Positions 1-62,413 of a stretch of DNA of 64,000 bases are shown in pieces (position 1 is the stretch's first letter; each line of letters begins with the position of its first letter). The position numbers were made by a program, and so were the translations under genes. The notes beneath the pieces were generated by a model. That model did no database searches. It was not told the origin of the DNA and was given only the letters and a program-made list of their open reading frames with translations. Source of the stretch: Pristiophorus japonicus (lineage: Eukaryota); the NCBI RefSeq assembly GCF_044704955.1, contig NC_091990.1, positions 177,506,001 through 177,570,000 on the forward strand, in the 5' to 3' direction.

Positions 1-145
1 ATACTTCCTTGTTGCTCAGTATTTTGCTCATCAGTGGTTCTATCTTTTGTCTCATGTCCATCACCAGTTTCTTTTGTGTCCTCCACCTTTGACCCTGCAC
101 TCAAACAAAGGAAAGAACATTCAGCTGCAATATTTTCAATGCTTT
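1..145 (-). CDS. Repeated exon C4', truncated by the window edge: ESIENIAAECSFLCLSAGSKVEDTKETGDGHETKDRTTDEQNTEQQGS...
   Basis: Acceptor tttcttgtctcag|AAAGC; frame open to position 1; the donor lies outside the window. Confidence 0.62.
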
Positions 146-2073
146 CTGAGACAAGAAACCTCAACCCATTCAGACAATCTGAATTTTTGCTGCTGAAGTC
201 CTGCAGTGCTGCTGCACCAGAGGTGAGCAGAAAAACGGACCCTAAATCCACCTGAACAGACAAGCCCAGATCCTGTCCGAATGCCAGGGACAAGTCATCT
301 GCATTAACGGGACAGGCCTCCGGAAACTGCAAGGGTGCAAGAGGGACGCTCGACCTGACATCGGTCCTGAAGTGCTGCCATTTCACTCTGAGGATGGTAG
401 AGGGAGCGCAGGAAGGACCCAACGAACTGAGTAATGTATTTTATTCATCGACGCCCCAGGGGATTCAGGGAAACAGTTTTAAAAAGGCAATCATTCGCCT
501 ATGGGTAAATTAGCTTTAGCTCGCTGTACTCTCCTGCATGTCGCACCTTATGACATTTTGGCATTAGGTTAGATACTTGTCACTCAATCTGCAGAAGTAA
601 TAGATTGATTTTCGAAAACAAAAATATTATTTAAAATACAGAATGGTGAAACTTGTGCAAGACAAAACCATTAACTCTGCATTAACGTTTAAACAGAGAA
701 TCGTCAGTATTTCTGCAAGCCCTTTACTTTACGTTTCAATTAGCGCAAAGATTGCATCACTGAGATTAGTGTAAACTTTTTGTGCAAAGTAATGGAAATA
801 TTACCTCCCCAGACATTAAATTGAAAGGGGGAAGCAAAGAGAGGCAGAAAAATCTAAGTACTCCCAGAGAGACCCAAAGTCAGAGAGCTTGAGCCAATGA
901 GGCAATAAAGTATCCTTACGAAATATAACGAGACATTCGGGACAGAGATATGAACAAAACCGCTGTCAGCTAAATGGAAAGGGACTGTCAGTGATACCCT
1001 CTCCCTGGTAATTGGACTATAGGACGGGTAAAAGATGATTGACATGAGAGATCCACCAGTCCATCGAAATAAAATATAAGAATGGGTGACTGAGAAGTGT
1101 AAGCAGGCATCTAGGGCCGGAGGCTTCCTAGAGGTTGACTAATGCTGGCTAAATAGCCTAACACCTTGGTCAAGTCTTAACCTCTGAAGTGAATCAATGC
1201 TTTTACTAACCTAACACCTCCAACAAGATGACCCTGCAGAAGTGACCACTGTCGCAGGCTGCAGGGATCCACCAATCCGAGACTAACGCTCTGCCTCGCC
1301 ATGGATTCGTCCATCTGTCTGTCTGTCTGGGACTCTGTTCCGGTCGTTTACCTCCACGTAGTTCAGTCTCCACTGTCCCGGGTTTGATGTGTATTATACC
1401 TATCTTAACTGTATGTAGTATCTGATTATGCTTTAAAACTATAACTCTTTAATAAAATATCTTACAAATCCTAAGAGCCTTTGGTGTGTGACCTGTGATC
1501 CTGATCTTACACAGGGATCTTTGAAATATGGGGCTTTCAGCAAATATTTACATTATCCCCTTAGTTTGTATTTCATGGCAAGAATGCATCTGATTGGATA
1601 CGAGATGGTCATAGACTTCTCTCGCTGCCCTGAATTTACCTCCGTCAACTAGCTTCAAATAATATTGGCGAATTTGCACAATGTGGATATTCAACTGCCC
1701 CCGTCTTACTCGCACACGACCTTATTGTGGTACAATCATTGTACAAATACTGTACTTTGATATAAGTGGGGAGCTCAGAAGAAAATATCATGAATTTCTG
1801 ATTTGAGAAAACAGGAGCTTCATCTCATCTGAATATGATGGCGACTACATCTTTCCATCAATAATGTACCGGGGTGTCAGTCGAGATAGATGTTCAAGTC
1901 CTGGAATGGGACTTCAACACACTACCTTCTGACTCAGAGACAAGTTTGCTGAATGATGTAGCTAATTGTTACAGGAATTTTTCAATTCCCAATGTGCCGA
2001 CTTCAATGCATGGACTACAAACAATTCTTTTTGCACTTCAATAGTAGATAAGGATTGTCACTATATTTATTAC

Positions 2074-2241
2074 CTGCAGTATCATTTGGTTTTGGTGTAC
2101 TTCCTTGTCCTTCAGTATTTTGCTCATCAGTGGTTCTATCTTTTGCCTCATGTCCATCACCAGTTTCTTTAGTGTCCTCTACCTTTGACCCTGCACTCAA
2201 ACAATGGAAAGAAAATGCAGCTGCAATATTTTCAATGCTTT
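2074..2241 (-). CDS. Repeated exon C3' (168 nt, phase 1-1): ESIENIAAAFSFHCLSAGSKVEDTKETGDGHEAKDRTTDEQNTEGQGSTPKPNDTA
   Basis: Acceptor attcttgtctcag|AAAGC, donor GCAG|gtaata, open frame. Confidence 0.72.
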
Positions 2242-2636
2242 CTGAGACAAGAATTATTAATTCTCCACACTATCTTGTTGTGGTCCAATTATTGTACAAA
2301 TACTACACTTTGATGTAAATGGGGTTCTCAGAAGAAAATTGCATCAATTTCTGAATATTGGAAAAGAGGAGCTTAATCTCAGCTGAATATGTTGGTGACC
2401 GTGACAATGTACCTTTCCATCAATAATGTACTGGGGTGTCAGTCGAGATATATGCTCAAGACCTGGAATGGGACTTCACCACACTAACTTGTGACTCAAA
2501 AACAAGTTTCCTGAATAATGTAGCTAATTGTTACAGCCATTTTTCAAGTCAAAAAGTGCTGACTTCAATGCATGGCCTACAAGCAATTCTTTTTGCACTT
2601 TCGATAGTAGATAAGGGTTTTCACCATATTTATTAA

Positions 2637-59955: not shown

Positions 59956-61664
59956 GACACAAACAACCTTCCGGATATAAAAGGGGTCAGAGGGTCTAGT
60001 AAGGAGGAGGAACTGAGGGAAATCCTTATTGGTCGGAAAATTGTGTTGGGGAAATTGATGGGATTGAAGGACGATAAATCCCCAGGGCCTGATGGACTGC
60101 ATCCCAGAGTACTTAAGGAGGTGGCCTTGGAAATAGCGGATGCATTGACAGTCTTTTTCGAACATTCCATTGACTCTGGATCAGTTCCTATGGAGTGAGG
60201 GTAGCCAATGTAACCCCACTTTTTAAAAAAGGAGGGAGAGAGAAAACAGGGAATTATAGACCGGTCAGCCTGACATCAGTCATGGGTAAAATGATGGAAT
60301 CAATTATTAAGGATGTCATAGCAGCGCATTTGGAAAGAGATGACATGATAGGTCCAAGTCAGCATGGATTTCTGAAAGGGAAATCATGCTTGACAAATCT
60401 TCTGGAATTTTTTGAGGATGTTTCCAGTAGAGTGGACAAGGGAGAACCAGTTGATGTAGTATATTTGGACTTTCAGAAGGCTTTCGACAAGGTCCCACAC
60501 AAGAGATTAATGTGCAAAGTTAAAGCACATGGGATTGGGGGTAGTGTGCTGACGTGGATTGAGAACTGGTTGTCAGACAGGAAGCAAAGAGTAGGAGTAA
60601 ATGGGTACTTTTCAGAATGACAGGCAGTGACTAGTGGGGTACCGCAAGGTTCTGTGCTGGGGCCTCAGCTGTTTACACTGTACATTAATGATTTAGACGA
60701 GGGGATTAAATGTAGTATCTCCAAATTTGCAGATGACACTAAGTTGGGTGGCAGTGTGAGCTGCGAGGAGGATGCTATGAGGCTGCAGAGTGACTTGGAT
60801 AGGTTAGGTGAGTGGGCAAATGCATGGCAGATTAAGTATAATGTGGATAAATGTGAGGTTATCCACTTTGGTGGTAAAAACAGAGAGACAGACTATTATC
60901 TGAATGGTGACAGATTAGGAAAAGGAGAGGTGCAACGAGACCTGGGTGTCATGGTACATCAGTCATTGAAGGTTGGCATGCAGGTACAGCAGGTGGTTAA
61001 GAAAGCAAATGGCATGTTGGCCTTTATAGCGAGGGGATTTGAGTACAGGGGCAGGGAGGTGTTGCTACAGTTGTACAGGGCATTGGTGAGGCCACACCTG
61101 GAGTATTGTGTACAGTTTTGGTCTCCTAACTTGAGGAAGGACATTCTTGCTATTGAGGGAGTGCAGCGAAGGTTCACCAGACTGATTCCCGGGATGGTGG
61201 GACTGACCTATCAAGAAAGACTGGATCAACTGGGCTCGTATTCACTGAAGTTCAGAAGAATGAGAGGGGACCTCATAGAAACGTTTAAAATTCTGACGGG
61301 TTTAGACAGGTTGGATGCAGGAAGAATGTTCCCAATGTTGGGAAGTCCAAAACCAGGGGTCACAGTCTAAGGGTAAGGGGTAAGCCATTTAGGACCGAGA
61401 TGAGGAGAAACTTCTTCACCCAGAGAGTGGTGAACCTGTGGAATTCTCTACCACAGAAAGTAGTTGAGGCCAATTCACTAAATATATTCAAAAGGGAGTT
61501 ATATGAAGTCCTTACTACTCGGGGGATCAAGGGGTATGGCGAGAAAGCAGGAATGGGGTACTGAAGTTGCATGTTCAGCCATGAACTCATTGAATGGCGG
61601 TGCAGGCTAGAAGGGCCGAATGGCCGACTCCTGCACCTACTTTCTATGTTCTATGTTTCTATGT
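59956..61664 (+). mobile_element. CR1-type LINE, 5'-truncated RT region
   Basis: ORFs 60195-60620 and 60627-61370 (NYRPVSLTS, QGSVLGP, FADD); tail TTTCTATGTTCTATGTTTCTATG. Confidence 0.95.
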
Positions 61665-62077
61665 GAGAGGGCGGGGGGAGGGAGGGGAAACTAGTGTGCT
61701 GAATGCTGGTTGTGGGTCGTATATGTGGCTTGAGCCTGGGGACGGTCAGAAATATGTGAGTTTTTTTAATAGCTCCTTATAAAGGAAGCTGATGGAACAA
61801 CGTATTCTTCTTTCTGGAAAGCAGAGCCAGCAAACCCCCTGAACACAGATCTGTGGTACTATGCAAACTCAGGGTGAATTTGGGCAGCCGAGATACATCA
61901 AAAGCGATGCAGACACGTGCCAGACATATTTAAACATTCGGTGATCCTCCCGTTACTCCACATGCTCAAAGGGGGGCTGCAGCAGAGGGCTCTGGCTGGC
62001 ATGATCCCTGTAATACCAATGTAACGTTCTGATACAATTTAACACAAAGATATCACACATGTTTTTGTGATGCTTAC

Positions 62078-62413
62078 CTGACACCTGCATTGTTGAAGTC
62101 TGTTTTGCATTTTCAGGGGTTATGAACACACTGCAAGTGTATCTTCCTTCATCTGCGATCTGTACTTTTGGAAGATGAAGTGAAGCATCTCCCTTTAGTA
62201 GATCAAGCTCAGAAATGTTTGCTCCAGGTCGCATGTTGAAATGCTGTCCTCCAATGAACGAATACACTTCTATTTGTTCCCCAAGGATCCATTGGACTCC
62301 TACCTTTTTTAGGTCGATGTCACCAACATAGCCAGTTACCTTGCATTTCAGGTGAACGTTTTCATTTACTAATACTTTCAGTGGGCTTTGAAATATCTCC
62401 AGATCTATGGTAT
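62078..62413 (-). CDS. NCR3LG1: IgV-domain exon of a B7-H6/NCR3LG1-like gene (336 nt, phase 1-1)
   Basis: Acceptor ttttttaaag|ATACC, donor TCAG|gtaagc. Peptide DTIDLEIFQSPLKVLVNENVHLKCKVTG...VQW...RPGANISELDLLKGDASLHLPKVQIADEGRYTCSVFITPENA has the canonical C, W and DxGxYxC. The RPGA..GDASL..Y.C.V..TP pattern matches the B7-H6 V domain as I recall it. An alternative in-frame acceptor lies 9 nt downstream. Orthology versus paralogy is not established. Confidence 0.85.

Follow-up and report, generated by a model that had tools for sequence, protein, structure and literature searches.

The locus described here raises the question of whether a shark membrane protein related to B7-H6 carries, behind its membrane span, a large modular tail grown by exon duplication, or whether the ectodomain and the tail exons belong to separate genes or the tail exons are in decay. 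The initial annotation of the window (the whole 64-kb stretch of Pristiophorus japonicus DNA that was analysed) had proposed twelve minus-strand exons, eleven of them complete and all of these in phase 1-1, with an open frame of about 850 aa, of which about 600 aa would follow the transmembrane (TM) exon. Our script reproduced this model exactly (V, C1, TM, S1-S3, Ig3, Ig4, R1, R2, R3b and R4; Table 1), giving a spliced length of 2551 nt, or 850 open codons, of which about 597 follow the TM exon. A pyrimidine-rich tract and an AG precede 12/12 model exons and a GT follows 11/11 complete ones; all eleven have a length divisible by 3, phase 1-1 and an open frame, and there are no stop codons at the exon junctions of the 12-exon model. 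No flanking genes were found within the 64-kb window, and tblastn detected no second copy of V, C1 or TM in it. It is likely that the greater part of a single gene lies in the window, which would lack only its leader exon and 3' end, and the R array probably continues past the window start. These coordinates supply exact exon borders and primer sites for cDNA and topology experiments.

Table 1. Positions of exons, repeats and duplicated segments in the window
Feature	Position	Strand	Description and basis
V-set Ig exon	62078..62413	-	336 nt, 112 codons, phase 1-1; Pfam V-set, PDB matches, splice sites
C1-set Ig exon	54797..55117	-	321 nt, 107 codons, phase 1-1; Pfam C1-set, PDB matches
TM exon	52578..52679	-	102 nt, 34 codons; hydrophobic stretch, then W-R-N-H-Q-K
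Interspersed repeat element with CT-rich simple repeat in the TM-S1 intron, both gaps inside	47690..50000	+	collinear with 56713-55428
Linker exon S1	39984..40076	-	93 nt, 31 codons; aligns to Mustelus post-TM linker; splice sites
Linker exon S2	36977..37069	-	93 nt, 31 codons; copy of S1 within the 3-kb tandem triplication
Linker exon S3	34028..34132	-	105 nt, 35 codons; acceptor 12 nt further upstream
Tandem triplication of about 3 kb bearing S1-S3	33541..40992		self-BLAST, 88-90% identity
Ig3, 142-aa Ig-like tail domain, copy 1	14621..15046	-	426 nt; HMMER relatives, AlphaFold, profile link to C1-set
Ig4, 142-aa Ig-like tail domain, copy 2	11297..11722	-	426 nt; 86.9% nt identity to Ig3
Duplicated 1.2-kb segments, 10680-11877 (Ig4) and 13999-15206 (Ig3)	10680..15206		self-BLAST, 88.7%
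Tandem repeat of about 1.8 kb bearing R exons	1..10605		self-BLAST, 85-90% between units; LINE interrupts at about 3340-5500
56-aa polar repeat exon R1	8852..9019	-	168 nt; splice sites; match to Heptranchias tail repeat, z 5.1
56-aa polar repeat exon R2	7046..7213	-	168 nt; splice sites; match to Heptranchias repeat, z 6.1
Dead R copy R3	2630..2802	-	2-nt deletion and lost donor
56-aa polar repeat exon R3b	2074..2241	-	168 nt; match to Heptranchias repeat, z 6.2
56-aa polar repeat exon R4, truncated by window start	1..145	-	93% identical to R3b

The first two exons identify the kind of ectodomain. The V exon matches the Pfam V-set model (2.4e-8) and the C1 exon the C1-set model (1.2e-13). Against solved structures the V exon scores slightly better with CD276 (B7-H3; 4.5e-14) than with B7-H6 (1.6e-12), these being its best PDB matches, while the C1 exon finds UrIg2 as its best match and also IgM and B7-H6 (1.3e-10). 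Both exons are 71% identical to the Mustelus orthologue LOC144499271 (about 70% overall), and the V and C1 domains of this orthologue match human B7-H6 at 2.4e-28, with CD276 as the next protein in the PDB at 1.3e-11. Measured by search scores and against solved structures only, the orthologue is thus far closer to B7-H6 than to any other protein, and the proposed kinship with B7-H6 holds. The TM exon stands where nearly all family members that were scanned have their TM, at about residues 240-300. B7-H6 is a ligand of NKp30, and the two are among the oldest MHC-linked innate recognition pairs, with ligand and receptor both expanded in sharks; a putative receptor of the shark ectodomain would be NKp30-like. 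Human B7-H6 (NCR3LG1) likewise has a V-set and C1-set ectodomain and a single TM, but the human tail is related to Gag and carries ITIM, SH2 and SH3 binding motifs, whereas here the TM is followed by Ig-like domains, linkers and polar repeats that add up to about 600 aa, and no Pfam match to a Gag-related tail was found in the tail exons.

Whether these parts form one protein can be judged from other species. Relatives of the 142-aa exon are RefSeq "uncharacterized" proteins from about ten chondrichthyan species (Heterodontus, Scyliorhinus torazame, S. canicula, Mustelus, Cetorhinus, Stegostoma, Heptranchias, Mobula, Callorhinchus), with weaker matches in newt and reedfish; no Pristiophorus japonicus proteins were among the database relatives returned. 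The domain usually begins at about residue 290-310 of the relatives, right behind the single TM, and more than ten chondrichthyan RefSeq models, which are computer predictions, hold a signal peptide, V, C1, TM, linker and 142-aa domain in one protein. In the window, tblastn places V, C1, TM and two domains in the order of the Mustelus orthologue. A possible objection is that V-C1-TM ends before about 40000 and that the linker, Ig and polar exons are a separate downstream unit, as 37 kb with many LINE fragments separate TM from Ig3, and some database models hold tail modules only (e.g. an S. canicula 509-aa protein). However, every tail exon begins in phase 1 and lacks its own leader, and therefore needs an upstream coding exon, for which tblastn offers no second V, C1 or TM. 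In addition, S1-S3 are homologous to the linker directly after the TM in the orthologue, and V-C1-TM is linked to the 142-aa domain in more than ten independent species models. We consider two genes quite unlikely, and the sequence evidence favours one gene, as the initial annotation had suggested.

The assembly itself could also mislead, as two runs of N (48365-48985 and 49069-49561) lie in a CT-rich simple repeat of the 12.5-kb intron between TM and S1, and a scaffold mis-joined there would bring together V-C1-TM and tail exons from different B7-H6-like paralogues. Yet the left (47690-47775) and right (49583-50000) flanks of the gap match the two ends of an intact inverted copy (56713-55428) with 92% and 95% identity and in the same order and orientation. 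Since both sides match one intact repeat copy, they appear to be one element and the join looks sound, which makes a mis-join highly improbable. No model exon touches the gap, and the reading frame is independent of it.

A single gene in the window would be one case of a wider family. The RefSeq proteins of Mustelus asterias (LOC144499271), Scyliorhinus torazame (XP_072322181) and Heterodontus francisci (XP_067902348) share the order of modules, including the polar repeats, and Callorhinchus milii LOC103174895 (UniProt V9K7L7) belongs to the same family with the same module order. Module copy number and order otherwise vary by species: Heterodontus has seven linker-plus-domain pairs, compared to three linkers, two domains and at least four polar repeats in the window, and the chimaera, newt and reedfish members have canonical C1-set domains added after two domains of the 142-aa type. 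We place the probability at about 0.7 that the exons of the window belong, ectodomain and modular tail together, to one gene of an old, unnamed family of B7-H6-like type I membrane proteins. The relatives are already in RefSeq, but only as "uncharacterized protein", and the literature searched yielded no description of a V-C1-TM protein with a long modular Ig tail.

The most prominent part of the tail is the 142-aa exon, for which HMMER found 38 proteins, 10 of them below 1e-30 and with E values down to 1.5e-97 and below. The AlphaFold model of Ig3 has a pLDDT of 91.4 and a pTM of 0.85, and it aligns to Ig V-frame domains with Z 11.4 and an rmsd of 2.5 A over 116 residues. The exon is thus confidently predicted to fold as an Ig sandwich, and the earlier description of the 142-aa exons as Ig-like agrees with the model. 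Ig3 and Ig4 do not match the Pfam C1-set model (Ig3 has no Pfam match at all, Ig4 only a sub-threshold PH_29 match), and in both of them W stands at the B-strand and I at the F-strand position, so that the canonical Cys-Trp-Cys core is absent. Nevertheless, a profile of the domain matches canonical C1-set domains, from both the ectodomains and the tails of the family, in two pieces flanking an insert (profile positions 2-40 and 90-140; E down to 1e-8 to 1e-12), and in distant members it matches the first and second domain behind the TM (1e-17 to 1e-36). By profile, then, the domain appears to be of C1 type, having gained an insert of about 45 residues and lost both disulphide cysteines; as it combines an Ig fold with a likeness to C1-set strands, it would be derived from the C1-set and no longer a typical member.

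The other two kinds of module are shorter. The S exons encode acidic linkers of 31-35 aa in three copies, and the alignment of S1 with the Mustelus orthologue is gapless and covers residues 276-305, immediately behind the TM of that protein (E 8e-4 in a single comparison). The 56-aa R repeat looks disordered by its composition. R exons match the polar repeat of a Heptranchias protein (residues 197-228) with z 5-6 and 0/200 shuffles, and no significant BLASTP match was found between R1 and the closest (Mustelus) orthologue. Four R copies are open; the fifth, R3 (starting at 2802), is dead, with TT in place of its donor GT and a 2-nt deletion, and the frame set by its acceptor runs into stops.

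The claim that the large post-TM region had grown by exon duplication is borne out by three separate tandem duplications, one per module type (Table 1). However, young copies may also be decaying ones, and the working protein could consist of V-C1-TM plus no more than one linker and one domain. The recent age of the tandem duplications, whose units are 85-90% identical, would fit this, as would the dead R3 and the dN/dS near 1 between copies (1.18 for Ig3/Ig4, 0.74-1.22 for R pairs), a ratio which alone also fits neutral decay. In decaying exons, indels would be expected as in their surroundings, but there are none in the 426-, 168- and 93-nt exons versus 27-58 gap positions in the flanks, and S3 is likewise free of indels, while its flanks show 30-43 gap positions. 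Of the 39 residues at which Ig3 and Ig4 differ, 8 fall in the 63 columns conserved across species versus 17.4 expected (P = 0.0003), so substitutions avoid the family-conserved columns. The R exons are only 71-85% identical versus 92-95% in their flanks (p down to 1e-12), and the trough in identity coincides with the exon borders, making the R exons sharp, hypervariable and indel-free islands in the 1.8-kb repeat; a trough confined in this way is not predicted by neutral decay. Together with the 2-7 domain copies in the models of relatives, this makes decay of the tail modules very unlikely. It should be noted that synonymous divergence is also raised in the R exons, and the pattern may therefore be one of homogenised introns around older exons and not of fast change in the exons. 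In the reading we prefer, that of functional tail modules, each kind has multiplied through a tandem genomic duplication of its own, and the copies have stayed in frame, free of indels and with conserved core residues while the exons diverged beyond the surrounding DNA. The window thus gives a clean genomic picture of tail growth by three independent duplications of phase 1-1 exons, and exons that are indel-free and hypervariable compared to their surroundings are evidence of function independent of RNA.

How such a tail would be used depends on its splicing and on the side of the membrane it faces. The idea of a mix-and-match tail gains support from predicted RefSeq isoforms, in other sharks only, which differ by exactly one module (Scyliorhinus torazame, Stegostoma, Heterodontus); cassette splicing would accordingly set the length of the tail. 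Heterodontus isoform X3 lacks only the 31-aa TM exon, and since all complete exons of the window are in phase 1-1, skipping of the TM exon leaves the frame intact here also and would yield a soluble form of the kind that RefSeq predicts in relatives. Hence the tail Ig domains might act extracellularly, the main product being a secreted chain of V, C1 and tail Ig without TM. Besides isoform X3 and the surviving frame, one Scyliorhinus torazame model fuses C1 directly to a tail domain, and tail domains of some distant members retain full Cys pairs. In the subfamily of the window, on the other hand, both disulphide cysteines are lost, and across the family most tail domains have a broken pair but the ectodomain never does: cysteine occupies the B- and F-strand positions in 12/12 and 23/23 of the ectodomain matches, compared to 32/73 and 18/68 of the tail matches. 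No conserved N-glycosylation site was found in the tail domain, and the TM is present in most models. A secreted main product is thus unlikely, and we infer that the tail is cytosolic because of the basic residues directly behind the TM, the broken Cys pairs of the tail and the lack of a conserved sequon.

Partial parallels to such an arrangement exist. Butyrophilins are B7-related V-C-TM proteins whose tails consist of several small in-frame exons followed by a folded cytosolic domain, and in this they resemble the present gene, but their tail domain is B30.2/SPRY, whereas here it is Ig and Pfam finds no SPRY. Disulphide-free beta-sandwich modules work in the cytosol in the integrin beta-4 cytoplasmic tail, titin and obscurin; these are a precedent only for the way of working, as their modules are FnIII or I-set, not C1-set-derived, and come without an immune-ligand ectodomain. 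Multiplication of C1-domain exons by tandem exon duplication has been described in the shark IgSF gene UrIg2 (PMC12227049), the source of the best PDB match of the C1 exon. In contrast to the tail studied here, the repeated C1 domains of UrIg2 precede the TM, are extracellular and keep their cysteines, and UrIg2 has a VJ-type V domain.

Conserved and undescribed B7-H6-like proteins with arrays of Ig domains behind the membrane would represent a new use of the C1-type domain, and to our knowledge C1-type Ig domains are otherwise found only extracellularly, in adaptive-immune molecules. It is possible, although we regard it as doubtful, that in this family C1-type domains have become intracellular in the tail of an NK-ligand-like protein, with selection keeping the modules distinct, as read from hypervariability confined to exons within homogenised tandem repeats, and splicing producing a repertoire of tails and soluble forms. 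If true, this would give a recognition system of the B7-H6/NKp30 type an intracellular (or switchable) arm that varies, and an immune ligand that may vary chiefly in its tail would be an unusual case.

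Comparison with relatives supports the reading of the minus-strand candidate as a single B7-H6-like gene with a modular tail, whose continuity in one transcript is predicted. Exons were recovered by script as stretches bounded by AG and GT and free of stops in the phase-1 frame, and this returned the twelve exons of the initial annotation with the same totals, 2551 nt or 850 codons when exon lengths are summed and the junction codons checked, with about 597 codons past the transmembrane (TM) exon. All 11 complete exons have a length divisible by three and a GT donor, an AG acceptor behind a pyrimidine-rich tract precedes each of the twelve, none of the 12 contains a stop, and every codon formed across a junction (last base plus the next two) is a sense codon. 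All sequence searches and folds were run on the exons one at a time. On the minus strand of 62414-64000 there was no hydrophobic ATG-to-GT candidate resembling the leaders of the orthologues, and the leader (signal peptide) exon probably lies beyond position 64000, outside the window.

Features of the candidate gene and its introns, with positions within the window
Feature	Position	Strand	Length or remark
V exon	62413-62078	-	336 nt
C1 exon	55117-54797	-	321 nt
TM exon	52679-52578	-	102 nt
S1 exon (linker)	40076-39984	-	93 nt
S2 exon (linker)	37069-36977	-	93 nt
S3 exon (linker)	34132-34028	-	105 nt
Ig3 exon (142-aa Ig-like)	15046-14621	-	426 nt
Ig4 exon (142-aa Ig-like)	11722-11297	-	426 nt
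R1 exon (56-aa polar repeat)	9019-8852	-	168 nt
R2 exon (56-aa polar repeat)	7213-7046	-	168 nt
R3b exon (56-aa polar repeat)	2241-2074	-	168 nt
R4 exon (56-aa polar repeat)	145-1	-	cut by window start
Dead R copy (R3)	2630-2802	-	2-nt deletion; donor GT changed to TT
Tandem unit of about 3 kb, three copies	33541-40992		carries S1-S3; from self-comparison
1.2-kb segment, two copies			carries Ig4 and Ig3; from self-comparison
Tandem unit of about 1.8 kb	1-10605		carries the R exons; from self-comparison
Broken LINE copies	3716-5480, 16660-19190	-	in introns
Broken LINE copies	20519-21460, 31271-32994, 43665-46637, 60195-61370	+	in introns

The outer part of the predicted protein agrees with what had been proposed from the sequence. 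The V exon matches Pfam V-set (2.4e-8) and the C1 exon Pfam C1-set (1.2e-13). Among solved structures, CD276/B7-H3 was closest to the V exon (4.5e-14), followed by B7-H6 (1.6e-12), while the closest to the C1 exon were shark UrIg2, IgM and B7-H6 (1.3e-10). The closest full-length relative, Mustelus asterias LOC144499271, is about 71% identical in V and C1, and its V+C1 matches human B7-H6 among the solved structures at 2.4e-28, with CD276 as the next protein at 1.3e-11. The label "B7-H6-like" therefore suits the ectodomain.

When the 142-aa exon was run through a full HMMER scan, 38 proteins matched, 10 of them below 1e-30; none came from Pristiophorus japonicus itself, and in none of the 38 is the module fused to a TRIM or pyrin protein. 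The matches are RefSeq "uncharacterized protein" models of Heterodontus francisci, Scyliorhinus torazame, S. canicula, Mustelus asterias, Cetorhinus maximus, Stegostoma tigrinum, Heptranchias perlo, Mobula and Callorhinchus milii, with remoter ones in newt and reedfish. One chimaera member is UniProt V9K7L7, which probably derives from elephant-shark cDNA. In these relatives the order is signal peptide, V, C1, a single TM (at about residue 240-300), an acidic linker and the 142-aa domain, the last in two to seven copies alternating with linkers or polar repeats. A Bombina match without a TM, which begins inside the domain, is probably a truncated model. Among the smaller modules, S1 gives an ungapped alignment with the Mustelus protein at residues 276-305, immediately past the TM (E 8e-4 in that single comparison), and the R exons share a motif of 28-31 residues with the polar repeat of Heptranchias (z 5-6, reached in 0 of 200 composition-preserving shuffles). 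These two comparisons support the homology of the R and S exons. In BLASTP, R1 scored E 2.4 with the Mustelus orthologue, and no alignment of S3 with the Scyliorhinus protein was obtained. Neither the 142-aa nor the 56-aa exons gave a usable match when their sequences were compared with Pfam and PDB. In the limited paper collection whose full texts were searched, no B7-family protein was described as having Ig domains behind its TM. The layout of the tail is known but unnamed, and the candidate gene belongs to an unnamed B7-H6-like family as a divergent member.

The suggestion that the tail could be mixed and matched agrees with the predicted RefSeq isoforms of the relatives, each of which differs by exactly one module, although near-identical repeats can mislead the predictors from which such isoforms come. 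An additional 167 aa, made up of a domain and a linker, distinguishes isoforms of S. torazame, and an additional single domain of 141 aa those of Stegostoma; another S. torazame gene has isoforms in which a domain is exchanged for a linker, and a Heterodontus isoform lacks the TM exon. Differences of one module are what symmetrical phase 1-1 exons, as predicted here, allow.

The Ig-like nature of the 142-aa exons was likewise upheld by structural modelling. An AlphaFold model built on an alignment of 27 relatives is all-beta (mean pLDDT 91.4, pTM 0.85), and Foldseek and VIA-align placed it among nine-strand V-frame Ig domains (Z 11.4, rmsd 2.5 A over 112-116 residues). The profile of the domain matches the first two post-TM domains of distant members over the full length (1e-17 to 1e-36). 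Ordinary C1-set domains, including the C1 of the ectodomain, are matched in two pieces, at profile positions 2-40 and 90-140, which flank an insert of about 45 residues, and the positions of the two C1-set cysteines are occupied by W and I. The domain looks derived from the C1-set and no longer a typical member of it, as Pfam fails to recognise it.

Several features point to a cytosolic tail: the basic residues after the TM, the lack of a conserved N-glycosylation site in the tail domain, and the family disulphide positions, which hold Cys in 12/12 and 23/23 of the ectodomain matches and in only 32/73 and 18/68 of the tail-domain matches. A soluble form with an extracellular Ig chain is nevertheless possible, because some distant tail domains retain both cysteines and TM-less models exist. 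Two such public models are independent of each other and keep the V-C1 and tail Ig domains in frame: the predicted Heterodontus francisci isoform (XP_067902349) is without exactly the 31-aa TM exon, and in a Scyliorhinus torazame model (GCB65803) C1 is joined straight to a tail domain.

The 12.5-kb intron between TM and S1 contains two runs of N (48365-48985 and 49069-49561) within a CT-rich simple repeat. The flanks of this gap, 47690-47775 on the left and 49583-50000 on the right, match opposite ends of a single intact, inverted element copy (56713-55428) at 92% and 95% identity, in the same order and orientation. Since both flanks belong to one interspersed element, the join looks sound. 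There is no model exon near the gap and the reading frame is independent of it; a small additional exon concealed there is possible, and the orthologues require none. The inverted copies of the element, 47690-50000 (+) and 55428-56713 (-), are 92-95% identical and flank the C1 and TM exons (55117-52578). An inverted pair in this position can favour exon skipping or back-splicing, and it may have a bearing on the TM-less forms.

Other repeats were also seen in the introns. In the V-C1 intron, at 58002-59946, a 19-nt unit is repeated about 100 times in a minisatellite with a GC of about 0.6, which yields long spurious minus-strand ORFs with many P, S and C residues, and a 44-nt minisatellite is located at 55885-56347. 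Five sampled LINE ORFs (4569-5036, 17543-18109, 32203-32991, 44987-45760 and 60627-61367) match Pfam RVT_1 or Exo_endo_phos_2, and one LINE copy breaks up a unit of the R array. Directly upstream of each S exon on the minus strand (34140-34450, 37075-37120 and 40080-40470) lies a repeat, labelled SINE-like in a separate initial annotation, which is the source of the S-exon pyrimidine tract; the acceptor AG of S3 is lost upstream of S1 and S2, whose acceptor is an AG located 12 nt downstream of that position.

Self-comparison revealed three separate tandem duplications, one for each type of tail module. The dead R copy, located 561 bp upstream of R3b, which is intact, lies where the unit end has been partially duplicated. 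Between the copies of the tail modules dN/dS is near 1, which taken alone would fit decay. However, the exon copies are free of indels whereas their flanks have 27-58 gap positions, and of the 39 positions at which Ig3 and Ig4 carry different residues only 8 fall in the 63 columns conserved in other species, against 17.4 expected (P = 0.0003). The exons have also diverged more than the surrounding DNA, with 86.9% identity in the Ig exons versus 91.4% in their flanks (p = 0.016) and 71-85% in the R exons versus 92-95% (p down to 1e-12), all of which argues against decay. Because synonymous divergence is raised in the exon copies as well, the cleanest reading is that the repeat units are kept alike by recombination and the exon copies kept different by selection, a pattern familiar from MHC genes. 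In a sliding profile the trough of identity matches the position of the 168-nt R exon, and identity is back to 87-98% within about 60 nt; in 56-nt bins the R exon has 66-82%, and the rest of the 1.8-kb unit about 90-98%. This suggests that in the R array homogenised introns surround exons that are kept different. Under either reading the predicted exon borders are biologically real. On the sequence comparisons made here, the candidate gene is special in that its three module types were amplified independently and the hypervariability of its polar repeats is confined to the exons.
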